A stretch of DNA of 64,000 bases from Zygnema circumcarinatum SAG 698-1b. Lineage: Eukaryota; Plantae; Zygnematophyceae. Of the stretch, positions 736-64,000 are shown piece by piece (the stretch's first letter is position 1; each line of letters opens with the position of its first letter). The notes beneath the pieces are model-generated. The model ran no database searches. It saw only the letters and a program-made list of their open reading frames with translations, and had not been told where the DNA came from. The position numbers were made by a program, and so were the translations under genes. Where the stretch lies: contig CM074807.1 in the NCBI GenBank assembly GCA_037447605.1, positions 992,001-1,056,000 on the forward strand. The letters run 5' to 3'.

Positions 736-1545
736 GGCCGAGAGCGGAGGGACGTCCTAGGAAACCAGTTCAAAATTAGTACTCTCTCTGTGGGAAAATG
801 AGCCGGAAAACCTTCAACTACAGCATTCGTTCTATTTTGTATCTGGGATTGCCCTAACAATCTGGTGTGCAACCTGACTAACCATGGCTAGTATTTTTTT
901 CTTACTGTTGGTCCAAATGTCTAGTACAGTACTGTATGAAACATCGTATTCGATATATTTTTCAAAATCGACCTATTTCGATACTGTTTGCTCTTTTGTC
1001 CGTACCAATGCGTGCAGAAAACGACAAAGGGACATGCCACCACCCCGACCGTACAATCTTCTTTTTGTGTTCCGTACGGGTACTGTGACAACACGTCACT
1101 CCAATCAGCGCACGTAGTTCCATGTTCACAGTTGCGATCCGCCCGTTTCCACTCGACGCACTCCTCTCTTTTCGCTAAACGACAAACTGACCGGCAAGCC
1201 CCAGCCGTATGGTCCCGCTATTGATTGGTCAGAACAAGATTGCTGACGTGTTTACTGTGGAGCAATGCTTCTCCGCTGTGCCCCTAACGCAGACCAAGGC
1301 CAAGCCAAGTTTCATTTGGCAATGGCTTGGAGATTTGTTCGAATAAAGTATTTCGCACGGTAACTTCGACCTTTATTTAATGTCTTTGGAGCAAAAACGC
1401 ATGTACTGATTTCGAACGACTGGTTTCTTGTAGAAGACGAGGTTGCCCTGGCTCATTTGACTTCTCCAGGAAGGACCGGCCATGGCGGCGACGCCTGCAC
1501 CTACGTCAGCAGGCAGGCTCCGCATCCCACTCTCACTCTCTGGCT

Positions 1546-4500
1546 ATGGCGAATGCTGCAGGTTGAGGGAAGGGAGGGGGTTTTAGGGTTGAAGGATGTG
1601 TGAGGGTGGAGGAGACGAAGAAGGAGGCTCAGCTTTAACGAAAGGAGCGTTGGTTGCTTTGGTTGGAGCAGACGAGGGGGAAGGAAGCTGCTGAGTGATT
1701 GGTTTTGGGAGAGTTGAGAGAGGATATTGTTGTGAGGGACTGAAAGGCATTGCATTTGTGTTTTTTTTGGTTCTGAAAGCGGTCTATCTGTGTAGGAGTG
1801 TGCATGAACAGGTCAAGCAAGTTGTGTCGATGTTGTTGCTGCTTCAAAATCTTTCAGAAAGTGAAGGAATAAGCTGATTATGATGTGTTCAAGCCTGTGC
1901 TTTCATGTACTTTTGTTGCAGCTCAAAGCAATTTGAACGTCCGTTACCCATGGAAGTTCCGGAGCTGCCTCGTGCTGCTGTTCGCCATCAACTTGGCCAT
2001 AAGTGCTTACGTGTATTTCGAGATATATCTCGATGCAGGGAAAGAGAGCAACTCCATGCTCTTGAAGGTATACTACTCGACGAACACTTTATTATCTTCT
2101 ATTGTGCTCACATTGATCGGTACTACTTTGTTGCATTCTGTGCTGCCTATTTGTACGTCATGAAACCTGGAGTACCCGTCGGCATGCAGGGTCGAACATT
2201 TGTTTGGTGTAGGTATATGAGTCGCTTGTGCCTCATTGAACTCGTGTGGGTTAAGGTGTGAGAAGATCAGTGACATGTTATATCTTCTTGTGCAATTTAA
2301 AGTGTTTTGAAATGGTAAATTTTGAAGGCTATTTAGCAATAAAACCTAAAAAATATGAAGACCGCCAAAGTGGAAACACAGAATTGTTATGCTTGATGGT
2401 AATTTATGGCCATATGCATGAGATCAAGTGGACTCAATCTGCAGTGTTTCATTAGCGCAGCATATCTTGTTCGTCTACCTGGAACAGACTGAGAATGCAT
2501 CGTAACGTAAAGTAGATTTTTTTTTTTTGATTTTTTTTTCGGTAGCATTGGACTAGTTCGCCATGCCGTTGATGAATGATGAGACAGAGAGTCATTCTGG
2601 GATGCAGGAGTCCAACACCAACAGTTCACAGATTCTGAGCAGTTCAGATGAGAGACAGACAGAGGTATTGAGGAAAGACATGAAAGATCCTTGTGGCTGC
2701 GATGAAGGGAGTGAAACAGGTGAGAAAGTATCACTTTTTCTGGTGCTTCATAAGAAAAAAAAGTAGTAACTTACAACCTCAGGTCCTGAATTTCGAGATT
2801 GGGTGTTTGTACTTGGTTAGGTTAACGGGAAAAATTACGTATTGAAACAAAAGGGCCATTCTAGAGGAACAAAGCCATACGGCGTTCCCTTCTGTATATA
2901 TACAAATTAACATTCATCTACTAAAGTGTTTTTTGTATAAAAATTCAAATTATTCTGACTGTTTTTGTATTATGTATTTCCAACTGTTAGCATGTAGTAC
3001 TTTTTGAAAACAAACATAAAAATAATAATAATAATATACAACCCAGTAAGGACAAAAAAAGAAAAACATAAAACGTCGTGTTGACCCAATTTTATAAACC
3101 TTTGCGCTCATCCTCCTTTTCTGTTTGCTATGCATGCCTTGCCAATGGTGTGACATTGTGCTTAGCTTCTTTGGTAACGGCCTATTTCTTCCCAAGTAAA
3201 CAGATCTTATATGTTCACTCCTTTTGCCGTTGTGCCCATTGATGTTGGCATCCAAAGAGTAGCTTATCTTGCTTGCATTTGTGGATGCTGCTGCTCCAAT
3301 CCAGGTGCAGGTGCTTCACCGGCTGTCCAGATGGAGGATCCGCTACTTCAAGCTCAATATGGACTGTACACATTATGTCCTCCTCACTATGTTGTGTCTC
3401 CTCCAACGGATGCAAAAACTCCTAGCGATGGGCTACCACCACAACACTGGTGGGGTCTCGGAGGACAGTCGGGCGAAGGATTTCCCGTGAACAGTAGTGA
3501 TGATTGGCCCATTGTGGATGCGTCGACTCTACCCAACTTGCCATATCTGCGCACAAGGTATGCAAGTTTACAACGTTTAGGCATTTGTTTAATAATGATT
3601 GTGGCACCTCTTGAATGATAGGTTTACTTCATAGATCATGAATAGTGTGTTGCGTGTAGATTGCTATTGCAGAGATTTTGACGATAGTTGCCCTCTGTTT
3701 GATTGCGTGTGTTTGTTCTATTTGTTGTTTAGAGTATGAGAGCTTCATAAAATCTGGAAACCAAATTGTTGGAACCCATTTCTGATTAGTGACACGCCTG
3801 TACCTATTTTTTCCTATGTATAGATATACGCGAATGTATAGCCATTGGCATGCAGCAATGAGCCGCCTTCGAGCTAAGCTTGTGAATGCGGGAGAGCCTC
3901 CCTACGCTCTCAGAATGAAGATGAGAACAAGGCAAAGTGATGAAACACAGATGGACCAAAGCTCCATTTTTGACTCTGTCTTGCAGCAGGCTGTCAAAGC
4001 TGCTGGCCTCACTCTAATCTCTCCTACAGTTAGTTCCATGGACTCAATAGATGGGATCAGAAACGGCCGCGCTGACAGGGAGGTAGGAACTGGCAATAAC
4101 TGGAGTACGTCAACGTGGGCGAATGATCGAGCATCGTACGAGGGATTTTGTAGTTTTTCAAGGTGATTTTTCAGAGCTTAATTATCACTAGGCGTTTTGG
4201 ATAGGAAGCAGACGTTAGCGAGATAAACAAAATGGGTTTAATTTTTCATATTCAAGTCGTTTAGTAGTAGACTATCGCATTAAAGCAGAATTGACTTGAA
4301 GTTTTGTCAACTTAGCTTGTTGAAGTTGCGTGACCTCATCGATGGAGGTGACTGCCTCATTTGTGCTCATTTCATAGTGGCTGGGTAGTCCAGTTCTTAG
4401 CTTTCTGTTCACTGGTACGAGCTTTTTTTCTTCTTTTGGTTTTTCTCCTTCTCCTCGCTGGTCGGAAAGCGACTCTCGAGAGGGCGACTACCGTAATTGA

Positions 4501-7500
4501 CTTACTTTTGGTGTGTGGATGCTCTGCAGGTCCGTTAAAGATCATGCAGGGATGACTGTATCCAGCGCTCCAATGCCGAAGGTTCTCACATACGATGGCA
4601 GCCTTATGTTCTACGGCTATGATGGCCTGACCGGCCCTCAGGGAGACATCATGCAGTGGTGTGACCTTCTGATCGCCCTCCATCTCATTGGCTACGCCTC
4701 TAGCCTCACTTTTCCTCTCACGTACTCTCATCCCTGCCCTTCACTGGAAGACTACGACGTGGTGTTTATCGACTACGCTGCTCTCTTGTGCCGTCAGTGC
4801 TCGTACGATTCCTCCCCCTTTCGTGCTTCCATGCATTGGTCAGTCGTAACGGCAGCAGCAGAACGGGCAGTAAGCAGCATCGATTTGATCGTAGTGTAGA
4901 ACTTTGGAATGTAGTCAGACTTTCTGCCAGCGAAGTTCGGGGTCACAGGAGGTCCCAACACATTGAGGAGTCCTACTATACATGTATATGTGATAAGTAG
5001 GATCCGAAACATTCACCATGCATTTCTTTCCTCATCACCTGCATGCACTACATGAGGTAGTGGGAATCGGAGGCCTTCAGTTGGACGCAAGGAAGCAAAA
5101 GTCTTCACGGCTGATGATCGAAGTTCTGCAAATCTCCTATGGCTGGGAGGTTTCAGTGTCTTTGTTCACAAAATGAAAACCCGTGAAATTATATAGGCAT
5201 GTTCTAACCTCATAAACTTTGCATCTGTTAATCGTGAAGTTTTCCGTGCAAATGAGATAATGACAGTTCGCTGGAAGAATTTAGAGCATGAGGATAGTTG
5301 GAGCAGCCTTATTATGTGTTCTTCTCGATGCACTTCTCGACTCTCAGCTAATTTTTCCGTAATTCTTGATGTGCTTATGTCTTATTGAATGCCCCCTTGC
5401 TTTTGCTGCCGCAGTTATCGTCAGGGCTTTTACACTCAAGGTTCGAACGGTGCAAAATGCAAAGTGAGGCTCCTTGATTTGTTTGGAACGGAGGAGATGC
5501 ATAATTCAGGGACCATTCCAGGCGAGTATTCTGGTGTGCGCCTACCAAGCCTTCGGCAATACCTATCTTTACAGCCGGATTACTCCCCTGGGAACACATT
5601 TCTCGGATTTGTTTCCTTCCAAGGCACTACGCCTTTGAGGTGGGAGCCCACACACAGTTCTTACGTTCCGTATTCCATGTTTTGATTGGGCTATGACTCC
5701 GTCGCTGATCTGGGTGCCTCCAGTCGATGATTTTCAAAACCTAACTCATGTAAAGGCCAAGTGAAATGGACCAGATTCTGACATCGTAACTCAGAGGGCG
5801 GAACATTTCTTAGATCGGTTGATTGAATGCAAAGTAAAGGATTTATAATATAGTACAAGTCATTTATATACGCGTTATCCTCCTCGGGATCATCAGAGCA
5901 GAATGCGCAGGAGGCGTAGCCTGTTGACTTATTCTGAGAAAGTCCAAATCTGATGCCAGTAAGAGTGCTTTTAGAAGCGACTACCGGTGTAACTTCGAAT
6001 TCAATTACGATGGGAGAGTATTGAAAAGTGGAGGGGGAGAGTCTCAACCAGAAGGAATAGGGCAGTGGGAAAGTGCCTTCACCTTTTAGATAACATATTC
6101 CGCTTCGAGCATCGACCTTAATTTTGCCATTTTTTCTCCCATGTAGGTCAGAGCGTTTGCTCATTAATTTCTTCCTCGGTTGCATTGTTGTCCCTCTTGC
6201 AGCTGAATGCATGAGGGAACAGACCATGAGGGCATATTCATGCAGGCATCTCGATGGGTGTCCAGCGCATAATCAAGAAGGGCTTCTCTCTCGCTGGAGA
6301 CATGTCCCTTCAGCACATTCATTTTGGCACATCAGGTATGTCCAGAGTAGCATACTCATTCTTGTACCGCCATACTGGTGGGGACCATTTCACTGAGGAG
6401 CATGAGCATGAGCATGAGTTACCATTGGGTCATGAAAAGGGTAGTTACTGCAGCATGCACATACATGAGGGCACCTCCGGAAATGCAAAGCGAAACCTCT
6501 TGACCATACTACTAGAGGTTAATCCTCCTTGTCAGATCATGAGAAAGCACTTGTAAATTTTCTTCAGGTTTCGGGGCTCAGGTTAGTGTCAACAGGTAGA
6601 AACTGACATAGTGACCTAGGTGCAGAAGACTGATTAAGGTAGTTGGGGACCCCATGATAACCTGTTTCGGTTTGAGGAGGGGTACGGAATGTATTTTATC
6701 TGACAATGGGATATGTATCTCGCAAGTCTTTTGAGTATTTGGTGATGACCAATTTAATTCAAGTTTAATGTGCCGCGTGATTAGTGTTCAACAGCTGTGG
6801 CAAACCCATTACTGTAATTCTCGCAGTATTATGCTAATGCTAAAACTGCTATTATGAAGGTAAGCAGGAGGATGTACGGGTGTTTAAAGCCTCACATGAA
6901 GGAAGATGAATGGGGTGATCGTTTACTGCTGCTAGCTGTTGTTTCGCAAATTTCCAGGCCTTCCTTACACATCATTCTCACTGAATGGCCCCCCTATTCA
7001 TTTTCATTGGGGTCTTTTTCTGGCCTGATTCTGCATGCAGGCCATCCCCCTCGAAAACTTTTGGATGTAACACAGCTGCTGAGAGTCAAATCTCGACTAC
7101 AAGTTGCAATAATTCACTCGATTATCATCGACAGTGGGAGGCTCAGATATGGGGCAAAGGCTCCAGTTACTTCAGAACTCGATACCCTGATGCTAATTTT
7201 AACCTGGAAACCTTTCTGTCTCAATCGTCGAAGCATGTACCTCTGGCAGCTTTCGTAGATGCAAGCGAGAAAGAAACTGTACCTTCATACGTCCGTATCA
7301 GCGAAAGGATCCTTACTCCTGCAGAAGTGGGCGAGCAGCTTGCAAGGTGAGAGCACAATGCTTCATATTTTTACCGCCATATGGATCTCCTCTATGTATG
7401 TTCCAGTTCAGACATCATCAGTGCTGAACTGAGAGCAAGCAGTGGAATCTATATTTCAGGTGCTCTATTGTGATAGGGCTTGGGCTACCCTTGATGGCAT

Positions 7501-8020
7501 CCGGCCTTTTGGAGGCAGCTGCCAATCCTGGCTTGCATCTCGTGCTGCCCAAATTTGATCCTCCCTGGACGTCCAGTAATCAGGATCAGATGCGGGGAAA
7601 GCCCACCAGTCAGCCCTTCACTTCTCAGCATCCTTTTCTGGAGCAGGTGTTGAGACCCCCATATGTTTACACCATCAACATAGCAAATCAGACGGTGATT
7701 TCGGACGCAACCCTCAAGCTCTTATGCGTTTTCAGGGTTCGTATGACTTTCTGCTCTTTTTGGGGCTTTGTTTTTCCTTTTGTAAAAGAATCTCCCGTTT
7801 ATTATCTGTGCAGGAAGTGGAGGCGGCGTTGATAGATATTCGCAAAGATTTTGATTATTTGGCAGGTTTGACGACCTTAGAGCAGCGGAAGGAGTTGGGC
7901 CGGAGAAAGGCTGCCGTGTTGGATGCTGTAGAGCCCTTTTATGGCGCGGAGTCTTTTCTGGTGAGAGTCCACAACTTGGTTCAAGGGCACAACGAGTGCT
8001 TTGGGGCTAAGGTAACTTAA
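1546..8020 (+). CDS. GT18 / MGAT5 (GnT-V)-like beta-1,6-N-acetylglucosaminyltransferase, type II membrane protein, about 10 exons
   Basis: N-terminal TM (CLVLLFAINLAISAYVYF). Spliced exons 4530-4802, 5415-5639, 7041-7346, 7460-7694 and 7814-8020 join with consistent phases. They give GPQGDIMQWCDLLIALHLIG, VVFIDY, CKVRLLDLFGTE, PGNTFLGFV, PSYV, IGLGLPLMASGLLEAAAN, PKFDPP, GKPTSQPFTSQHPFLE and PYVYTINIANQ. These are collinear with recalled human MGAT5 motifs GPLGELVQWSDL, LIYID, CMLRVLDSFGTE, PDNSFLGFV, PSYV, VGLGFPYEGPAPLEAIAN, PKFNPP, GKPT..TSQHPYAE and PHVWTVDLNNQ. The 5' exons and start codon (1546 versus 1482) are less certain. Confidence 0.85.
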
Positions 8021-10646: not shown

Positions 10647-19145
<8,499 letters not shown>

Positions 19146-22432: not shown

Positions 22433-23392
22433 TCAAACGACCTCTTCTGGAGACCAACAGAAGTGTTCGTTCCGATTAAGGGCATCGAGAGCTGCAAGAT
22501 GGGTCTCTTTAATACTCCAAGAATACACATCTGCATTTTCTTGCATTCTCTCCTTCCGCAGTGACTTAGGAATCACCACTGCACCCCTCACTCCTCCCAC
22601 CCATCATCCATCTGCAACTTGGCAACGATCTTTCCACTATCAAACTCTTTTCAAGAAGTAAGAGAAATTCAAAACGAAAGCAACATCCGCTGCCGATGGA
22701 TGAAACACATCAGGAAATCTGCCAAGCTATATGCATAAGAGCCTGGTTGGCAGAGCCTCTTAAACCCAAGAATGAAAGAAAGAGGGGTTCACACAACTGT
22801 TCGGTTAGAAGCACGTACCCAGATCTCGCTGAAGGCCCCATCGGAGCAGTATTTGTGCCGGAGTTCGTTCGTACAGTTCCGCAGTTGACAAAACCAAGGG
22901 ATCGTTCAAGAGCTGTCAGAACCCGCAGGCCCTCCGGGTGAGAGGGAGTGGGAGGGGGAGCGGGAGAGGGAGCGGGAGAGGGAGCGGGAGAGGGGACGGG
23001 AGAGGGAACGGGAGAGGGAACGGGAGAGGGAGTGGACGAAAGAGCAGGAGAGGGAGCGGTGAGGGAGCAGGAGAAGGAGTGGGAGAGGGAGTGGGGGAGG
23101 GAGCGGGAGAGGGGGCGGGAGAGGGAGTGGGAGAGGGAGTGGACGAGGGAGCGGGAGATGGAGCGGTGTGGGAGAGGGGAGAGGGAGCTAAAGGGCGAGC
23201 GGGAGAGCGTGCTGGATGGAGCGAGAGTGAGAGAGAGGAAGACGAGGGAGGACGAGGGGGAGGGAGGAAAGGCGGGGAGAAGGGTTGAAGGAGAGAAGAA
23301 TGTTCACCTGTCCACATCCTAATGGTGAATATGCCACTACTTGGATACTGAACTCCATGCATAATTTCCTGAGACTCTCCTGNNNNNNNNNN

Positions 23393-29101: not shown

Positions 29102-32100
29102 ATGGCTGCCGCGCCCTACCTCTCAGCATGGGGGTACCCCCACTTGGTGTGCGCGCTGCTCGCATCCATGGCGGCGGCTGTGGCTTCTTTCCTCCTCTTG
29201 GAAGGGCGAGGACGCGGGAAAGAGAGGGGCAGCGATGGCGGCAGCAAGCGTGAGGGAAGACGAGACGGAAGCAGGGCCAGTGCTGGAAGAGACGGAAGAG
29301 GAAGGAAGGGATGCGAAGTCACGGAGGGACTGCTTGGATGCATTGGGAACACTCCGCTCATCCGGATTGAAAGCTTGTCACGAGCAACAGGATGCAATAT
29401 CCTTGCAAAAGCGGAGTTTCTGAATCCTGGGGGAAGCATTAAGGACCGCGTGGCTAAGAAGATCATTGAAGAGGTGAATCTGCAGACCATTGAAGGAGGG
29501 CACTTGAGCAAGTGAGAAAAGCGAGTGTACAAGAGCTGCTCGTACGCATGCAGATGTCGGTTTTCCTTCAGGTCTTCCCCTTGGATTTCTTGCCTTTTTT
29601 TTTGGGCTGGACACATATCTTATTGGTCCATTTTGCATCCGTATAGAGAGGCATGAGAACGCATCGCACTATCGGATGTTGTCCATTTTCTCCCAATGTG
29701 CATGGCTTGGAAAACCTTGCGAAGACTATTGCAGGCGGGCTTTTGTAAGTACTGGAATAAAATAAAGGACGTCTAATGAAAGACATTCCACCAACAGGCA
29801 CTTTTAACTTTTCTAGAGGATGTACGTTACCAAAAGCCACAACCGACCTCTTTAGTCAGAAATAACGCCACATGCCATTTCATAGACCACATTTTCCAAA
29901 CTAGCTTCGTGTCCCAGAACTTTATAAATATGCTTTACGATTTGTGTATGTCACTTTATAATTCCAACGCGAGAAGACCACTTCCCCAGCATCATGCTTC
30001 CGAGCCTTTCCAATCAAGATGATGTTTGAAAGTCGACGATATGCTCCAGCTTCTCCCCTTTTCATAAAAGCGGGAATGTAAAAGTACTTCATTCTGTCAT
30101 TGCTTGAGGGGAATTATCCTTGAACTCAGTGTACCCTTCTTCATTTGTTTCCAACTGCAGAGCAACTTCTTGTGTATATTCTCATCTTCCCTCCTTTGAG
30201 CCGGGCAGGCTATGGAATCCGGACAGTTGCGGAAGGGAGGCCTTATAGCAGAGGGCAGTGCTGGAAGCACAGGCGTCTCCTTGGCCATGGTGGCGCTAGC
30301 GGTCGGCTGCAAATGCTTTGTGGCTCTACCTGACGATGCTGCGGAGGAGAAAGCGCTGATTTTGGAGGCTTTGGGAGCTGAGGTGAAGAAGGTCCGGCCC
30401 GTTAGCATCACGCACAGAGACCATTTTGTGAATGTGGCGAAGCGACGGGCAGCTGAGGAGCAGTCTAAGCTGGTGGCTTGGTGAGAAGGGAGAGTCCTCT
30501 GTGTGTTAGCAAATAAAGTCAGGGAATTAGGGCGCAGATTTTGAAAGACATGTTTCTCACAAGTTTTCAACGAATGCTGCTAGGTTATGGAGTCACTTGA
30601 GGGAGCATCTAGGGGTGCACCTAAAAGTTTGCTCACCGTATTCTCTGAGAGCTCTCAGGAATGATACTCAGGCTTCTGTTTCATTTCTGTTTGGTTGCTT
30701 AGGGAGGAGGCTCATCCGCGGAAAGTGGACTCAGAATCCTCAACAAACGAGGGGGTTTGTGGGGAAGGGAGAAAGGATGGAGGGGAAGGAGAAGCCAATG
30801 CGAGCTTCTCTGAAACGTGGGCACTTCAAAGGAAGCGAACGATTGAAGGGCAGTGCACAAGTTCTGGAATACATGATGCCCACGCAGGTGGAGGATGTAA
30901 AGAAGGATTGCCAGGGGACTTCGCAATCACCTCGGAGGACGATAGAATTGCGTGTCAATGTAGAAACACTGAAAAGGATGTGAGAGAGGAAGAGATTGAA
31001 GGGAAAGAGCAATTCAGCATTCAGCAGAATGGAGGGACGGAGACAGTTGCATACGAACCCCCGCGAGGAGGCTTCTTTGCAGACCAATTTGAGAACTTGG
31101 CAAACTTTCGAGCGCATTATGAGAGTACAGCGGCAGAGATATGGGAGCAGACAGGAGGAAACATTGGTGCGTTTGTTGCAGCGGCGGGAACGGGTGGCAG
31201 CGTGGCAGGCATTTCCTGTTACTTGAAGGTAATAATAGCAAAGAGATGAGTAGGAGTCTTGTTTGCGAAATTGGGGAAGGTGGAGGTGAGTGCTTGTTTT
31301 GGAAGCTGGCATTCAGCTGGTTTATTCTTTTGGTGCGATGCTGTAAGAAGTTGCCGTTTTTGCAATGTCTATTGCGTGGAATCAAAGGGTCGATCTTTAG
31401 TCCCTTTCGTGAGGGTCTTGATAATGTTCAAGATGGAGGTGAAAAGTTGTCGTAGTACATCTTGCGGCATGAAGGCAAGCAGAGCCAATTAGGATGAAGG
31501 ACTGATTTGAATATCACTTCACTTGTCAAGTGACAAGATAAAGTTGCTCGCAATCAGCACCACAGGCCCTACACTGTCCCTAAGCATGTATCCATTACCA
31601 ATAGCCAAAGCATTCAGTTATCTGTCCTGAACGACATACTCATGCATCTTCTCCATCTTGTCCATCCTCTTTGCACATCTCAACAGGAACGAAACCCACA
31701 CATCAGGTGTTACCTCATTGACCCTCCAGGCTCAAGCTTGTATAACAGAGTGACACGTGGCGTCCTGTTCACACGTGAGGAAGCGGAAGGCAAGCGGCTG
31801 CGCAACCCCTTCGACACCATCACGGAGGGCATCGGCATCAACCGACTCACAAGGAACTTCGCGCGAGCACGCCTTGACGGAGCTTTTCGAGGGACTGACA
31901 GGGAGGCCGTGGAAATGGCTAGGTAAGCGAGGGCGAGGGAGAGGGCGAGGAAGCGGGAGAGGAAGAGGGAGAGGGAGAGGAGGANNNNNNNNNNAAGGGG
32001 GGAGGCATCAATGGGGAGCGAGAGTCATAGGAGGTGTGAGGAGTGTAGGCTCTCTGGGAGGCACTTACCTTCACGCATTGGTGCCATCCATGGTGCAGGT

Positions 32101-32971: not shown

Positions 32972-33018
32972 AATTAGGGTTAGGATTAGGGTTAGGGTTA
33001 GGGTTAGGGTTTAGGGTT
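32972..33018 (+). repeat. Short telomere-like array, mainly TTAGGG with one TTTAGGG, just upstream of the glutaredoxin-like ATG
   Basis: ttagggttaggattagggttagggttagggttagggtttagggtt. Confidence 0.85.
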
Positions 33019-33031
33019 AAGCTCGGCAGCC

Positions 33032-34657
33032 ATGGCTGTCCGACCCCTCCTCTCATGGCGGCCCTTCGTCATGCCCGCGCGTGCGAGCGGTGCCTCCATG
33101 CATATGGCTACCGGGAGGAGGCCTTGCGCGGTGTCTAATTGTGAGGAGAGACAGCCATGGCCGAGCAGAGGGAAGCTGCTGCGCCAGGGAGCAGCCATGG
33201 AAATTTCCTCAAGAAGAGAGCCTGCAGGTCTGCGCTGGCACCATAGCCTGGGTTTGGGTACTTCCGGTCGTAGCTTGATCTTTAGGGTTTCAGAATCAGA
33301 TGCAGGAATTAGAGTCAGGGATGGGGCGAGTTTTAGGGTTAGGGTTTCGTCCATGGTGGGTGGAGGAGGGGAGCGTCTTGTACTGTACAGCAAACCCGGG
33401 TGCTGTCTGTGTGACGCTTTGAAAGAGAAGCTGGAGGCGGTGCTGTACTTGGGAGACAAGGGTATTCTGGAGGGAGTGCAATTGGAGGTGAGGAAGGACA
33501 GCTGTAAGAATCAGAGTAGGGAAAAGAATGGGTAGGGGGAAGAGGAGGAAGGTCAAGATGGGATGAGTTGCTGCATTGGGGATAACCTTACTTTTAGTTT
33601 TGATGTTAGATTTAGGCTCACCTTTAGGGCTGGAGTTGATCTAATAGTAAGGGTTGTCAATATGAAGGATGGGTCGATATGAATGCAGATTGAGTTTTAG
33701 TATGAAGATTAAGTGAAACTTGGGATGAAATTGTTAGCCAGGGTGACATCACGTCTTTTGTAATTTGACTGAATTACCTTTGTGAATTGTTGTGCTGCTG
33801 TTGCTGCTTGCTTGCTGGAGAGTGTGAGCTCTCTTATTACAAGGATAAAATAGTCGAACCTGCTAACACCTCCAGTTTATCTGGATCGCGCTTTAGAAAT
33901 CGCATTCTTTCGTTCTGGCACATCACGTAAACCCCCATCAAATTTTGGAATTCACGTTTATTTGGAGGAGGCATGTAAAGAGGGAGCGTTCCATTCTAAA
34001 ACAAAGCCGAAGAGATCAGCTTATAGTCAACCCTTGCATTTGCTTTGAAGCTCTTGGAAGGTCTTATTCGTTTGATTATAGGTTGATGATTTCCTCATTC
34101 AGCAGTTGCGGCGGTTGATGTGGTCAGATACGTGACATAACCACAAGAGTGGAATGGGAACAAGCCTATCAATATGAGATCCCAGTGATGACACGCTTAA
34201 CAGAAGCAGGGAACGAGGTGATGCTAATCCGAGACTCTAAAATCCTTGTTTAGATAGAGCGGTTGTGGCGGGTGAGAGTGAGCTCAGATCTCAACATATG
34301 TCAAGATTGTTGATTGATTATGGAAGCTTTTGGAAAGTGGATTATGGTTATTAGCACTGTGAAGGCATTGATAATTTTAAAGTGCATCTTTAGGTGAATT
34401 GTTTGCCATTTCCACATCTTCAAATTCAGCTGAATTCTTTTGGTTTTGAAATCGCCAGTCTTCTTGGCTCGCATAATGCTTGTAGATAGATGAGCAAAGG
34501 CATGGTGTAGAATGGGCTGTAAAGAAAGAATACTGCTCAATGGTACCTTTTGTTCATCTTCTTTCTCTGTCGATTTTGACAGGTTCCTATTCCAAGGCAG
34601 TCTCCTCGGGTCACAGTGGACCGACTAAAGAAGCAGCTTCAAGCGGCCTTTTCTTAA
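33032..34657 (+). CDS. DUF836 glutaredoxin-like protein with a putative transit peptide (3 exons)
   Basis: LVLYSKPGCCLCDALKEKL (CxxC); exon 2 IRDITTRVEWEQAYQYEIPVM; exon 3 VPIPRQSPRVTVDRLKKQLQAAFS* ending at 34657. Confidence 0.85.
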
Positions 34658-35528
34658 GCGGTCGGTCGGAGGTGTGCTTGAGAGGGAGGCAACTCGTTTT
34701 TAAGTGTCAATATATTACAAATGCTCAGAACGGCGTCTCCTATTCAAGGACTGGAGAGAGCCCCCATTACATTTTTGTTTAGGTTCGGAAGCTTGCGCCC
34801 CTTAATTTTAGTTTTCGCACACGGAGAACGGTACAGTTGATGCTTTACATGTTCCAGTGTTCCATTACATATGAATGGAACAATCAGAAATTATCTGTGA
34901 TTCCTTGTTCAACCGTGTCTCTGTAAACATGTTGGTTGTTGGACCTTGTTTCATTTTGAACTGTTGACTTGCCACGTACACTATTTTGGCCACGTAGCGA
35001 CTTGTTATTGGAAGATGGGCGGCGATAAGTTCGAAAGAAAAAGAAAGGTCCCAATTCTCTATGTTTGATGCACTTAATAGAATTGCATTGTGCAGCAATC
35101 GAGTCAAAGACGAAGGAAAAACACAAAACACGAACACGATAACTCCCATAGGGACTTCCAACCACTTGCCATTCAATGCCACATCTCTCTCTTGCCATTC
35201 AATTCTTTATATAAAGCTTGTTATACAGTCTACTGCCGTGACCTAACTTTTTGGCGGAGCTATTTAGCTTTGCAGAGCAGTACAGCGGAATCCGTTGAAC
35301 TGTCAGCAGCAATTGACTCAATCCCTCGACCAGAAACCGGCTGAAGAGCAGCGTTGCTATGCACATCCTGAACCCTAAACTTGGAGTGAACAACCTTCCA
35401 AACAGATAAATGTTTCACTGCATAAACCAAGATTTTAAACTTTGCGAGCTTCTAACCACTAAGATGGAGACCGGTCCTTCCACCCTCCCATGCAGTCAGA
35501 GACTACCCGGGGACCCCACGTGTCCTAA

Positions 35529-52600: not shown

Positions 52601-55600
52601 AAAACATGAAACCCTAAAAACCCTAAAAACCCTAAAAAACCCTAAAAACCCTAAAAACCCTAAAAACCCTAATATCCCTAAAAACCCTAAAAACCCTAAA
52701 ACCCTAAAACCCTAAAAACCCTAAAAACCCTAAAAACCCTAAAAACCCTAAAAACCCTGAAAACCCTGAAAACCCTGAAAACCCTAAAAACCCTAAAAAC
52801 CCTCGAATGTGGCTCCGCCCGCAGCAACGCACCCTGCGAGAATGCATTGCGGATTCAATGGTCGAGCCACGTCAGCTCGAGTTCGACCTTATCAAGCTTC
52901 TGGGTACGAGCTATGGAGGCATGGCAGACACGCAAAGTTCACTGCACATCATGCGGAATGGTACGTGGAAATTGCTCAAGTTCTTGTTTGCTTGGAGATG
53001 TACCCATTTGGGAATTGGCTGTGTGTGGATTTACCCCCAAAACATTCCCACACTAGATACTAGGACTCCCATTTTGGTAAAATTTTAGGGCTTGCTAATA
53101 AAACATAGAAGATAGAACATAGAACATAGAACATAGAACATAGAACATAGAACATAGAACATAGNNNNNNNNNNAGAACATAGAACATAGAACATAGAAC
53201 ATAGAACATAGAACATAGAACATAGAATTCTTCGCAGCTTCCATGTCGAGTCCTGAGCCTCTTATCTGTTCTCTGTATTTGCTTCTTGTTTTGAATATTT
53301 GCAGGTCAGATCCGAGTGATGAAACGGACCGAGGTCGCATTTGCAGTCGTGGAAGTGCTCGAAGCGCGGGGTTTGGAAGCCAAGGACTCGAACAGTACGT
53401 TTTTCATATTCACATAAAGGATGTCTATGTTTAATTTATATGTTTGCTGGTGGAAAGTGGTGAGAATCTCAACTTGCGTGCATCGCTCGGTCCCTATGTG
53501 AGGAAAGGTGGTGAGAAAAGGGAGAGTTTCTAGTGGGAGGGTATGCAGGCAGGTGCAGCTTGATTCCACTTTTTGAACTCTTTTAGGGACAGACAACTCC
53601 TTGAATGCGTGAATCGCTGAACTCGCGTGCCAACCTTTTTTTGCGGACTCCTTGTTGTGTTAGAATATGTTTGTGAAGTATTTGATGCTCAAACTTAGCA
53701 CCCTAAACCCGGAAAACCCCATGAACCCAGATAGTTGGCTAATTGACATGGTCATACCCCTCTTACCTTTTCGTAAATTCATTGAGGAAAGTCTTTGGAT
53801 ATAGGTTAGATGTTAGTTCGAGCTATGAGGCTTCTATGAATCATCATAATGCAGGTGCTGGATACAGTCTGTGATGCACTACTAGTTTTGAGTATTTATG
53901 ACTCTCTTTGTCAATACGGAGAGTCCTTCATACAAACGTTATTCAAACACAAGAACCGAAGCCCACTTTCTTCTTCGATTCCTGTGAGCTTTTATCGTAA
54001 CCACCTTCTTCCTCAATTGGTGAATGTTGAACAGGTCTCCTCGATCCGTATGTTCGCATGAAGATGGGCCGCTTGAAGCTGCATACCCAAGTGAAGAAGA
54101 AAAACATGGCCCCTGCTTGGAACGAAATTTTCCGTCTGCCAATCTCTTCATGGGATGCTCCGACCACAGTTCATTTTATTCTAAAAGACCGCGACATCCT
54201 CGGCACCAAAAACAATCTGGTGAAACCAAATTGCTCTAAACAACTGTCATCTTGGATTCAGAATGGTGGTTGTATGCCTGTTCGTTTTTTCAAAGAATGT
54301 GTCAACCAGAGCATTACATGTTCCCCATACTGCCCCTAACACTCTCATTCATTCATTTGTCTCTACGGTTCTATGTGATGGGAAAGGCTGACAAGAATTT
54401 ACGCTTGCATGTGGCATTTTTAGGGTTTTTAGGGTTTTTGTCTCACACACTGCCAAACTTTGGAGCTCTTTGCTTCGGCGCTTTGCAGGGGCATTTTAGG
54501 GTTTTTAGAGTTTTAGGGTTTTTAGGGTTTTTGCATTTTAGGGTTTTTAGAGTTTTAGGGTTTTGAGGGTTTTTGTCTCACACACTGCCAAACTTTGGAG
54601 CTCTTTGCTTCGGCGGTTTGCAGGGTCATTGCAGTTTGGACCTTTCCAACTACCGAGATGGAGAGCGCCATGACTTGCAGCTCCGCCTCACGGGCTGCAA
54701 ATTAGGGCAACTGAGAGTGGCTGTAACTGTTGTGGAGGAGAAACCCTGCTCTCTCTCGCCTTCACCTCTTAGTGATAATGGGACCCCTACTTTATCCTCA
54801 ACAGAAAAGTTATATGCTTCCAGCCCTTCCTTGGCATCTCTAAGTTCAGATTCTCTGTCAGAGAGCGTGGGAGGGTCATCCTGCCGCTTCACAAAGAATG
54901 AAACCCAACCATTAGAAAGTCTAAGCTCGTTCCAACGTCGACAGGCCCTCTTTTTGAACAGAAAGGAGGAAGCTAACGGAGGTTTGCAGCTTCAGAAACC
55001 AATGCAACCAATGCAGAGACGAAATCTTGAGACAGAAAATGCACATTGTGAGGGTGAAGAACAGAGTGCTGAGGTCCGATCTCAGTGTAAAAAACGGAAC
55101 CACTTTTTGGTGCAGCCGGGGAAGACTCTGCATAGTTGGTTTCATGCAAAACCTGATCAGCCCACCATGTCCCATTCAAGAAGCATGCCAACCCCTCCCA
55201 ACTTTGATGGAATGTCCGATAGTGATTCAGCACTCCCTATCTCCCGTTCAGAACCCACTGCCACTCCCTCAGACTCTCTTGAGGGTTGTGGGCTACCAAA
55301 CCAATTTGTGGAGAGGGATGGCCAAAGGGGCAACATGGCTGTGGAAAAGGATGCAGTTCAGGGGACCATTCTAACGTCTGATTACTCCTCTCCAGTGGCT
55401 GCCTTGAAGGCTACTACTGAACACGTTGGGGAGCATAAGGTGCTGGAAAGAAGGCGGTCTATTTCCCAAGTAGAAGAACTATTAGACATGTCTCCAAGTG
55501 GAAGTGTCATTACAAGACATACAGAGACTTGGGAGTTTTCTGAACGGCAACCGGAGCCTTGTAAGGAGTCGGCGTATTGCCTTCATGCTGGAAGGCGAGG

Positions 55601-61157: not shown

Positions 61158-64000
61158 ATGGCGCTGGCAGAGCCTCGGCTCCCTCCTGCAGGGGCCATGG
61201 GCTGGCAGCCATGGCCGGGCTGCTTGCGCTCTGCGGCCAGGCCAAGGGCGGTATCTCGGCTACAATGTCTCCGCTTTTCGGAACTCGAACTCTCTCCAGT
61301 CGTTCTCGCAGCATCAGCATTCACTCGCTTCTCTGAATCCAGAAACGGTTTGGGGGAGTTTGTTCGGAAAGGGGGGTGCTGGAGGAGGGAGGGGTCGAGG
61401 AGGGGCATACGTCAAGATCGGCCATGGTCCATTAGGCTGCATTCCTTTCCAAAGCACAGAATAGGCACACACGCTGAGGTGCAGGATTTTCATCTAGTCG
61501 AAAAATTATCTCTAAAAGCATGCCGAATACTCAATGCATTTCAAGAATGGGCGCATCGAGCAGCAAAATGGATAACTCAATTGCTAGATGCAGTTTTTCC
61601 CGATACCATTCTCCAGCTGGCAAAGCGAGCCTTCGTTATTTTTTCATTGGGGGCAGCCATTTTTGCAGCCAGCTGTTTTGATGCAACCTTGACGATGAGA
61701 GAGAGCAAGGCATTACAGGAGCATTCTGCAAACTTACATGCTGCAACTCCTCTGGAACATAACATTTCGCCGCTTGGTAGCGTCGTCAGTCGAGAAGTTG
61801 TGCATCCTTTATCTTCCAAGGCGCCAGGTTCGCTTGTCGTCGATCCTGGCGAATTGACGGCAGAGGAAGAAATATCCCTCCGTTTATGGCTTGAGGATGT
61901 GAAGAATGAGGCCCGTGGAATTGGAATCTCTGAGAAGACATTGGAGCTAGCATTGGACGGAGTGCGGCCTTTGCCAAAGGTGGTGGAGAAGGATCGCAGT
62001 CAACCGGAGGTCGTGCTCACTGCGAAGCAATATCTAAGCAGGTATCGACGTCCGCTCTTGTTTGAAATGTGTGGGAACTTAAGTGCTATATATTTCTAAA
62101 AGCCATACTAGTGGAGTGTTTCTCTTAAACTCTCAGCATCGATAATATGTTTGACTACGTATCCTGCTCTTTGATGTCATACAACTTGGTTTAACTTCAT
62201 AAGAAGAACTAGTTGCTTGGCTTTGGTTGATACTGACAGATATTAGTTCTGTATGTGGCAGTCGTGTGAATCCCTACACCGTCAAGAAGGGTGTGGAACA
62301 CTATAAGCGTTGGAAAGATCTATTGAGTGAAGTTGAGAAGCAATATGGAGTGCCTGGTAGTGTCCTCGTGTCACTATGGGGTACAGAGAGCAGGTGAGTC
62401 TTTTGTCACTGAAGTCCAACTCCATCTTAAGTCTGCAGCTCTGCTTTCAATAATAAATGGGCAGTTCTTTTTTTCTGCGTAGGAGATGTTAGGGGCGAGC
62501 ATATTATCGAGTGGAGCAAACCTAAAGCAATGCGTGTATATGCAATAATGAATTCCAGCTCGATCTATGTCTTATCCTTCCACTCCTTTTGATTTATCTT
62601 CACATGATTTGATGACTTTCTCCATGTACATTTGATGGCATCGCCATCGTGAGATCAATGCCACATCACTCTCTCTGTTCCCATGATAAGCATATGAGTC
62701 AGTTCTCAGATAGCATATGAATATTGCATTGAGATGGTTGTCGGAATTGAGTAGAATCCGGTCCTACCTCGTCCCTTGCCTTGTGAGCTTAAGATTTCTC
62801 CCAGTCCTATAAGCGACATTCTCCATTCTGGACCATTCTTTGTGCAGCCGTCCTTAGCTTAGAAAAGCAGCAGGTCCAAGCTGTGCCCTTGGCGCTGGTC
62901 AGGTGTGGATGAAGCCGCGCTTTTGCGGGTGGAGCTGTGGCTTCACCAGCTATGGCAGGAATCAGGGCAGCTTTGACGCAATACAAGCACTCTTCACACT
63001 AGCACGGAACAGTGAGCAGGTGCATCCCTTTGAAGCATCTTTGCATTCACTTGAACTTTTTAGGACGACCTCTGGAGAGTCGGGAAGGTGCTTTAACCAT
63101 TGTCAAAGGTGCTCTGTAGCATAACGACCGATGGTTTTATCCTTTTTCATTTCCTTGGTATCCCTATATATGAATTCTCCGGTCTTCCAAAACATTTCAC
63201 ACTAGTTGAATAGTTGCTTCTAGGCTGAAGAACTGCATTTTCAACGGAAACGGCGATTACCCAATGATGACATTCGAAGCAGTCAGAAATCCTCTTACAT
63301 TTTGACTGGGAATTCGTTCTGCAGTCTCAGCGGGCAGCATACTTTCGTAAGGAGCTTATTGAAGCTTTGCGACTTATGGATGGTCCAAATATGGAGGTGC
63401 GTTTGCGGAGTTCATGGGCGGGTGCTCTCGGCCAATGCCAGTTTATGCCCTCCTCCTACAGAGCGTACTCCGTTGACTTTGACCGAGATGGGCTGGCAGG
63501 TAAACAGACGGCATTCTGGTCCAAGTCCAGAACGTCAATACATATTTTTTTAAGGAGAATTTGGGTGCGGGTGTCATGTAGAGAAGGCCGAAAAAGTTAC
63601 AATCTTGTTTGGGAAGAAAAGTGGAAATTGGAGTTCAAGAGCTGAATTGTTAAGGGGTGAACGTTGATCAATCGGCAGCTGCATTGCCTGCATCGCTACA
63701 TCTCATGTGACGTTTGTTTGAGGGTGCAGACATTTGGACATCGGAAGCAGATGCTTTTGCATCCATGGCCAATTACTTGGTGAAGAATGGGTGGCAGTAT
63801 GGAGCGCCCATAGGCCAAATGGTGATGCCCTTTTTTTCTTGTCCACCATCTTCTTGTATCAGAACCCTGCAACTCTTGTATAACTCTTCATGCTTTTATG
63901 TTCTCCTCCCCTGTGCTTACAGCAGATTGACAAAAACAGCTGCTAACTCCATTCGTAAGTTCTGAATGTTGTTGTGCAGGCAACCATTCCTGCACGCTTT
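61158..64000 (+). CDS. mltB: Lytic murein transglycosylase B (MltB / SLT_2 family), putatively plastid-targeted; 3'-partial
   Basis: Spliced protein: WLEDVKNEARGIGISEKTL..D.SQPE, VEKQYGVPGSVLVSLWGTESSYG (catalytic Glu), ALFTLA, YFRKELIEAL, SSWAGALGQCQFMPSSY, VDFDRDGLADIW (EF-hand-like loop), ASMANYL..GW. At least 5 in-phase GT-AG introns. Confidence 0.9.

Follow-up and report, generated by a model that had tools for sequence, protein, structure and literature searches.

A transcribed GT18-family glycosyltransferase gene with a protist-like active site in the streptophyte alga Zygnema circumcarinatum

The window analyzed here, a stretch of 64,000 nucleotides from Zygnema circumcarinatum SAG 698-1b (assembly GCA_037447605.1, contig CM074807.1, positions 992,001 to 1,056,000 of the forward strand), carries at positions 1482–8020 (+) a native nuclear gene that is transcribed and whose 10 coding exons encode a protein of 708 residues. 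Judged from its profile and database matches, this protein is a member of the glycosyltransferase family GT18 (Pfam PF15024, Glyco_transf_18), the family of the N-acetylglucosaminyltransferase GnT-V (MGAT5), and the gene adds a new and well-documented member to this known family, from a lineage in which the family has hardly been studied. The explanation that we favor, with slightly better than even confidence in all of its parts taken together, is that the gene encodes an expressed GT18 Golgi transferase of altered specificity and is part of a small clade of algal genes within an old eukaryotic family that has survived patchily. An expressed and intact algal GT18 gene with a protist-like active site, situated outside the clade of named animal sequences, points to such an older family, and its product offers a tractable means to ask what the nonanimal GT18 enzymes do.

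GT18 family membership, active site and predicted fold

The PF15024 profile matches three separate exon open reading frames (ORFs), 7470–7832 (E 3e-15), 5389–5685 (E 7e-6), and 4513–4899 (E 6e-3). The first match, with 56.1 bits against a curated cut-off of 28, is significant from one exon alone, and the two weaker-scoring ORFs fall on the collinear profile positions 121–183 and 197–258. When all PDB sequences were searched with phmmer, the sole matches were chains of human GnT-V, with an E value of 1e-14 for the best exon; they span human residues ~290–594 and end near the window exon 7460–7694, and the protein tail beyond them aligns with other animal sequences. When other GT18 proteins were compared by BLAST, the matches started at residues ~290–330, and several of them extended to residues 702–705. 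The homology to human MGAT5 and the collinear motifs, reported in a preliminary description made from the DNA letters, are therefore real.

The closest relatives were found when the 78-residue exon 7461–7694 was run by phmmer against 1.84 billion cluster representatives in an exhaustive search. This search returned 114 proteins at E ≤ 1e-3, three of which scored below 1e-10, and two of these three, P0001 and P0002, belong to the same clade as the window protein. The Logan assemblies from which both derive are unannotated. P0001 is encoded on a spliced transcript contig (L001, run SRR8128905), is 55% identical over 370 residues, reads GPQGD at the catalytic-base motif and carries PF15024. P0002 lies on a genomic contig (L002, run SRR9302961), which holds almost the whole gene at 32–60% identity; its anchor resembles that of the window protein, and it has introns, short ones, at four positions where the window gene is also interrupted. 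All the other relatives are at most 31% identical to the window protein.

Hydropathy indicates a single N-terminal membrane anchor at about residues 24–46 (codons 1960–2028), with a peak at residues 23–29 (Kyte-Doolittle values up to 2.0) and with Arg and Lys preceding it; the sole other hydrophobic peak in the 708-residue protein is a strand of the Rossmann core, residues 560–583. A short basic cytosolic tail followed by one anchor is the layout of the type II Golgi glycosyltransferases, in agreement with the type II transmembrane anchor described earlier. The luminal region of ~280 residues that follows (residues ~47–300) matches no Pfam family at E ≤ 1 when the ORFs that contain exons 2, 4, and 5 are searched, and the animal N-terminal domain PF15027 (MGT5A_N) is likewise not found at that threshold on these ORFs; the region is nevertheless conserved in L002. 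At its other end, the protein stops at an FLxRVHxL...C motif, where animal sequences continue into a Cys-rich C-terminal domain. The window protein thus lacks the domain set of animal GnT-V orthologs, PF15027 together with the Cys-rich domain. A conserved "PWK" motif ahead of the anchor, which animals also have, occurs in only a few sequences and was not convincing.

Active-site residues were compared with those of human GnT-V by using PDB entry 5ZIB, whose chain numbering corresponds to the UniProt numbering of the published structural study (PMC6107550; Nagae et al. 2018) with an offset of 115. This offset reproduces Glu297, Asp378, Glu520, Glu526, Lys554, and Arg558 as the correct residue types. 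In the human enzyme, the catalytic base is probably Glu297; Glu526, a neighbor of the donor ribose, cannot be dispensed with; Glu520, close to the donor N-acetylglucosamine (GlcNAc), forms a salt bridge with Arg558, and the E520A variant is almost inactive; and the GlcNAc-β-1,2-Man arm is contacted by Asp378, Ser379, Phe380, and Lys554 (PMC6107550). In the window protein, the base position is occupied by Asp333 (GPQGD), and it is Asp in all three algal clade members (GPQGD in the window and L001, SSQGD in L002). On the donor side, Glu526 is kept as Glu580 (LLEAA), but the Glu520–Arg558 salt bridge is replaced by Met574 (PLMAS) and Gln613, and by Met/Gln in all three algal members. In the acceptor pocket, Asp378, Phe380, and Lys554 are kept as Asp406, Phe408, and Lys609 (GKPTSQ), whereas Ser379 has become Leu407 and the loop Trp401–Leu406 is absent, a deletion that appears in both the phmmer and the MAFFT alignments; the acceptor side therefore departs from that of GnT-V. 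The five residues Asp333, Asp406, Phe408, Glu580, and Lys609 are identical in the three clade members, which are only 32–60% identical overall.

Across the family, Asp378, Phe380, Glu526, and Lys554 are retained in nearly all aligned rows, and the Glu520–Arg558 pair and the "WG" of Trp401 are features of animal-like sequences. The combination seen in the algal clade, a hydrophobic residue at 520 with Gln at 558, is common to dinoflagellate-type and other protist proteins. The human residue numbers given in the preliminary description prove right, and so do its readings of the individual motifs, which the PDB alignment places as Asp at Glu297 (GPQGD), Met at Glu520 (PLMAS), and the conserved Glu526 and Lys554 (LEA and GKPT). 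The altered active site that it reported also stands: the base is conservatively changed from Glu to Asp, and donor- and acceptor-proximal residues are changed as well. Its "animal-type" label is misleading, given the lack of any match to PF15027 and of the Cys-rich C-terminal domain, the protist pattern at positions 520 and 558, and a position outside the clade of named animal sequences.

The AlphaFold model of the relative encoded by L001:3-1301 (63-row alignment) has a mean predicted local distance difference test score (pLDDT) of 81.8 and a predicted template modeling score (pTM) of 0.81. In a Foldseek comparison with the PDB, human GnT-V accounts for all of its top 19 chains (E 1e-19 to 1e-17, template modeling (TM) scores 0.53–0.60), and the next GT-B enzymes follow at E 1e-4. 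An Atlas shape search with the same model gave chordate MGAT5 clusters as the best matches, with a TM score of 0.71 by query. The structural comparison with human GnT-V thus returns GnT-V itself as the best match, by way of a relative 55% identical to the window protein. Like human GnT-V (PDB 5ZIB, 5ZIC, and 6YJQ–6YJV), the window protein has a type II anchor, a GT-B core, an acidic base position and the four residues equivalent to Glu526, Lys554, Asp378, and Phe380, at ~28–31% identity to animal GT18 sequences; unlike it, it carries Asp, Met, Gln, and Leu at positions 297, 520, 558, and 379, does not have the Trp401–Leu406 loop, shows no match in the N-terminal region and ends without the Cys-rich domain. 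MGAT5B (GnT-IX), the animal paralog acting on O-mannose glycans, is of the same family and fold and gives similar scores (P0043, P0012); it differs by its position inside the clade of named animals, away from the algal clade, and by the animal motifs PYEG ... KPTSR.

Relatives and phylogenetic position

The animal matches that can be named come from schistosomes, a bivalve, a lamprey, cnidarians, amphioxus, a sponge, and mammals, while the nonanimal ones come from a dinoflagellate and one EukProt transcriptome. An ESM-Atlas feature search adds Basidiomycota GT18 clusters, and one GT18 was counted in each of two species in a cryptomonad genome paper (PMC6260743). The protist GT18 proteins available for comparison are those of the dinoflagellate Biecheleria (P0115 group), the EukProt protein P0048 (transcriptome shotgun assembly GECG01000201), and the metagenomic P0028 and P0016. 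The dinoflagellate, P0064, and P0028/P0016 types resemble the algal proteins at positions 520 (hydrophobic) and 558 (Gln); P0048, the nearest nonalgal relative, has a short C-terminal tail like that of the window protein; and the protist proteins, like the algal clade, lie outside the clade of named animal sequences. They are unlike the algal proteins in their low identity, only 27–30%, and at the base position, where the dinoflagellate group keeps Glu and P0048 has Gly. Four further contigs (L003–L006; Joint Genome Institute (JGI) metagenome and Logan) carry intron-split GT18 genes of AT-rich eukaryotes with a nonanimal motif pattern, PLFGH ... KPTDQ/KPTNQ, which indicates that a protist-type GT18 family is present in environmental samples.

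No named green-plant protein is among the matches of the 78-residue exon search, whose query was a single exon and whose collection does not hold the window's own protein. Since the 708-residue protein is missing from that collection although its transcripts are present in public contigs, absence from it is weak evidence. Word-index protein searches with P0001 and with the algal alignment gave no more clade members, and these are weak too, as they missed even animal relatives. A pattern scan of viral contigs with P0001 found nothing, and an Atlas lead to giant-virus proteins (score 0.88) was weak and not confirmed.

In the tree of 55 rows, the three algal rows group together with a Shimodaira–Hasegawa-like approximate likelihood ratio test (SH-aLRT) support of 99. 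This clade lies outside a 45-row clade, supported at 96, that contains every named animal sequence; it adjoins P0048, with the dinoflagellate group beyond. The split between algal and animal sequences is independent of the position of the root, and the algal genes are therefore not nested among the named animal sequences. This makes a recent transfer from animals, or contamination, unlikely. The preliminary description had offered retention from early eukaryotes or horizontal acquisition: recent acquisition from animals is disfavored by the tree, which does not decide between retention and an ancient transfer.

GT18-like genes have been noted in plants before. Wang et al. (2017) report PF15024 genes in "some dicots, ferns, algae," place the plant genes in one monophyletic clade having PF15024 without PF15027, and conclude that the plant clade lost GnT-V activity and that GnT-V originated de novo in animals (PMC5225481). 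The architecture of those plant and algal genes, whose species are given only in the figures of that paper, is the one found in the window protein. This prior mention weakens the earlier suggestion that the activity of this lineage is unrecognized.

Plant glycoengineering imports the human GnT-V gene, and the preliminary description set a "plant-lineage" gene against the lack of GnT-V activity in angiosperms. That contrast does not hold: the gene comes from a streptophyte (conjugating) alga rather than a land plant and leaves the angiosperm lack of GnT-V uncontradicted. We found no literature on GT18 in streptophyte algae or on GnT-V in bryophytes. In the plant literature, "GT18" denotes At5g62220, an Arabidopsis gene of family GT47, and not the CAZy family.

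Possible activities of the protein

In the explanation that we favor, the protein would be a type II Golgi enzyme acting as a metal-independent, inverting UDP-sugar transferase. Asp333 would deprotonate the acceptor hydroxyl in the role of human Glu297, Glu580 would hold the donor ribose as does human Glu526, and Lys609, Asp406, and Phe408 would line the acceptor pocket in the manner of human Lys554, Asp378, and Phe380. Our best guess is that its reaction would be the β-linked addition of GlcNAc, or of a related sugar, to a glycan that contains mannose. Its donor or branch specificity probably differs from that of animal GnT-V, because the Glu520–Arg558 pair has become Met–Gln and the α-1,6-arm-selecting Trp401 loop is missing; a β-1,6-branching activity of the window protein is pure conjecture.

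Several points weigh against this explanation. The window protein has Met at the position of Glu520, whose replacement by Ala nearly abolishes the activity of the human enzyme (PMC6107550), and the Asp at its base position is one methylene shorter than Glu. The near relative P0048 has Gly (NPQGG) at the base position, so that not every family member need be catalytic; judged by this residue, P0048 may be a noncatalytic member or a user of another base. The fold model is that of the 55%-identical relative L001:3-1301 and does not include the N-terminal 300 residues of the window protein. Lastly, the maximum-likelihood tree was made by the "quick" method, is unrooted, and has most of its rows without an organism name.

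The alternative that survives best, which we regard as a tentative possibility, is that of an active enzyme with the GT18 fold that works on glycans other than N-glycans (O-linked, cell-wall, or secreted) and/or uses another UDP-sugar; the same may hold for GT18 proteins from Basidiomycota, dinoflagellates, and cryptomonads. It draws on the Met/Ile–Gln pattern at 520/558, which is common to dinoflagellate-type and protist GT18 and is not that of animals, on the occurrence of the family in Basidiomycota clusters and cryptomonads, and on the large luminal N-terminal region, which is specific to the algae and conserved in L002. No nonanimal GT18 with a known substrate was found, however, and positive evidence for an alternative acceptor is accordingly lacking. 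If the protein does act on other glycans, this would be the first function for a nonanimal GT18 within the literature searched here.

It is unlikely, in our estimate, that the protein is a true functional GnT-V, adding β-1,6-GlcNAc onto the α-1,6-mannose arm and making tri-antennary N-glycans that were later lost in land plants. The binders of the GlcNAc-β-1,2-Man arm, Asp378, Phe380, and Lys554, are conserved together with Glu526, and GnT-V provides the closest solved structure and the closest Atlas clusters. Yet Trp401, described as the selector of the α-1,6 branch, is deleted and Ser379 is changed to Leu; Glu520 and Arg558, proximal to the donor GlcNAc, are replaced; and the conserved residues recur in GT18 proteins of the dinoflagellate group and of metagenomes and may therefore be a mark of the family rather than of the acceptor. 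A 2025 review of microalgal N-glycosylation mentions neither GnT-V nor tri-antennary glycans. Should N-glycan branching prove true, views on how N-glycans evolved in the green lineage would have to change, and an enzyme from that lineage would be at hand for making multi-antennary glycans.

A broader version, to which we would give still less credence, holds that GnT-V-type branching predates animals and that the algal lineage sister to land plants keeps an ancestral GT18 adding a β-1,6 (or related) branch to N-glycans. The active site with its Asp base and Met–Gln pair would then be the ancestral, nonanimal form of the enzyme, and tri-antennary N-glycans would exist in the green lineage and have been lost toward land plants.

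Gene model, transcripts and genomic neighborhood

Transcription of the gene is attested by public sequencing data: at least half of the sampled words of the GT18 region are present in seven runs, which bear one organism label and come from three studies. Assembled contigs of runs X1, X2, and X5 were aligned to window positions 1840–7839, and each contig joint was adjusted to GT/AG ends to set the exon borders (Table 1); such contigs show the existence of spliced forms, not expression levels. Eight GT..AG joints are identical across contigs from the three studies, and two further joints belong to an alternative cassette exon. The gene has nine introns in total, eight of them GT-AG and one an inferred GC-AG, and its 10 joined exons give an uninterrupted ORF of 708 codons.

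The start codon is at 1482, as RNA contigs of X1 and X5 join 1482–1512 to 1922. Their loose end at 1918 reads window positions 1479–1508 and, with the GCAG shared at both sides, yields the GC-AG intron; an in-frame stop lies upstream of this ATG at 1458–1460. The X2 contig runs unspliced through 1840–1921, which points either to a second 5' form or to intron retention. ATG 1546, the gene start of the preliminary description, is in frame and is followed by a GT donor at 1562, but it is not the start used in the X1 and X5 contigs. The gene end at 8020 proposed there is correct. The five exons counted at that stage are the last five coding exons, which make up the GT18-matching part, and the whole gene has twice that number. 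The central proposal, a native spliced GT18 homolog in a green-lineage genome, is borne out by the spliced contigs of three studies and the clean ORF, and the gene is expressed besides.

Table 1. Exons of the GT18 gene in the window
Feature	Position	Strand	Content and support
Coding exon 1	1482..1512	+	Start ATG 1482 (MAATPAPTSA...); followed by the inferred GC-AG intron 1513-1921
Coding exon 2	1922..2067	+	Rest of cytosolic tail and single membrane anchor; joint 2065/2606 in three runs
Coding exon 3	2608..2719	+	Ser/Thr-rich stem; GT..AG joints in X1, X2, X5
Coding exon 4	3305..3557	+	Luminal N-terminal region; contig joints; conserved in L002
Coding exon 5	3824..4162	+	Luminal N-terminal region; contig joints; conserved in L002
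Coding exon 6	4530..4802	+	GT18 match begins; GPQGD motif with Asp333 (codon 4645-4647)
Coding exon 7	5415..5639	+	LDLFGTE motif: Asp406, Leu407, Phe408 (codons 5476-5484); Trp401 loop deleted
Alternative cassette exon, 133 nt	6203..6335	+	Joints 5637/6201 and 6332/7038 in X1, 6332/7038 in X5
Coding exon 8	7041..7346	+	IWGKGSSYF region; second Rossmann-like half begins
Coding exon 9, most conserved	7460..7694	+	PLMAS (Met574), LLEAA (Glu580), GKPTSQ (Lys609, Gln613)
Coding exon 10	7814..8020	+	C-terminal helical tail; stop TAA 8018-8020

The cassette exon is located inside a 1.4-kb intron, and translation shows that its inclusion causes a frameshift and an early stop; the corresponding transcript is likely, from its sequence, to be a nonproductive isoform of the "poison exon" kind. 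On the opposite strand, an antisense ORF of 178 codons (5691–6227, −) lies inside the same long intron and overlaps the cassette exon region, and low-depth contigs of all three runs cover the intron that holds it.

The frameshifted isoform, the changed base residue, the loss of Glu520, and the Gly at the base position of P0048 could also be read as signs of a dead or decaying relic, either a pseudoenzyme or a gene being lost. We find this improbable: the ORF is intact across nine introns, spliced transcripts occur in three studies, and the five active-site residues are invariant in three divergent clade members.

A 764-codon single exon with a CRICE...HS..C motif lies at 15526–17820 (−), 7.5 kb from the GT18 gene. 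Its only named relatives are angiosperm IRE-type (IREH1/IRE4) kinases, at 28–52% identity over short stretches, and by its sequence it probably encodes the N-terminal part of an algal IRE/MAST-like kinase. Scaffold gaps appear in the window as runs of 10 N at 23383–23392, 31985–31994, and 53165–53174, none of them between the GT18 gene and the kinase exon. A Glrx-like gene (PF05768) stands tail-to-tail with the GT18 gene in L001, at 2149–2820 (−); its counterpart in the window is found at ~33000–34700 (+), where it has the other orientation and two scaffold gaps separate it from the GT18 gene, 25 kb away. Such linkage may hint at an old shared neighborhood that is loosely conserved.

That the gene is foreign, through contamination of the assembly or recent horizontal transfer from an animal or a protist, could be argued from a family that is overwhelmingly animal in databases and from the lack of any annotated green-plant protein in the searches made, but it is very hard to sustain for a gene that shares a gap-free stretch with an exon whose sole named relatives are angiosperm IRE kinases, is transcribed in same-species runs from three studies, has nine introns, four at positions common to L002, has, as in L001, a Glrx-like gene in loose linkage, and is not nested among the named animal sequences, even though an ancient transfer would still be possible.

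No Rfam family was found in the window. Toward its end, an ORF at 61158–62099 (+) matches in its C-terminal part SLT_2 (PF13406; E 4e-6, 26.8 bits against a cut-off of 24.3), a bacterial lytic transglycosylase domain that is unexpected in a eukaryotic nuclear genome; this ORF may be linked to plastid peptidoglycan.

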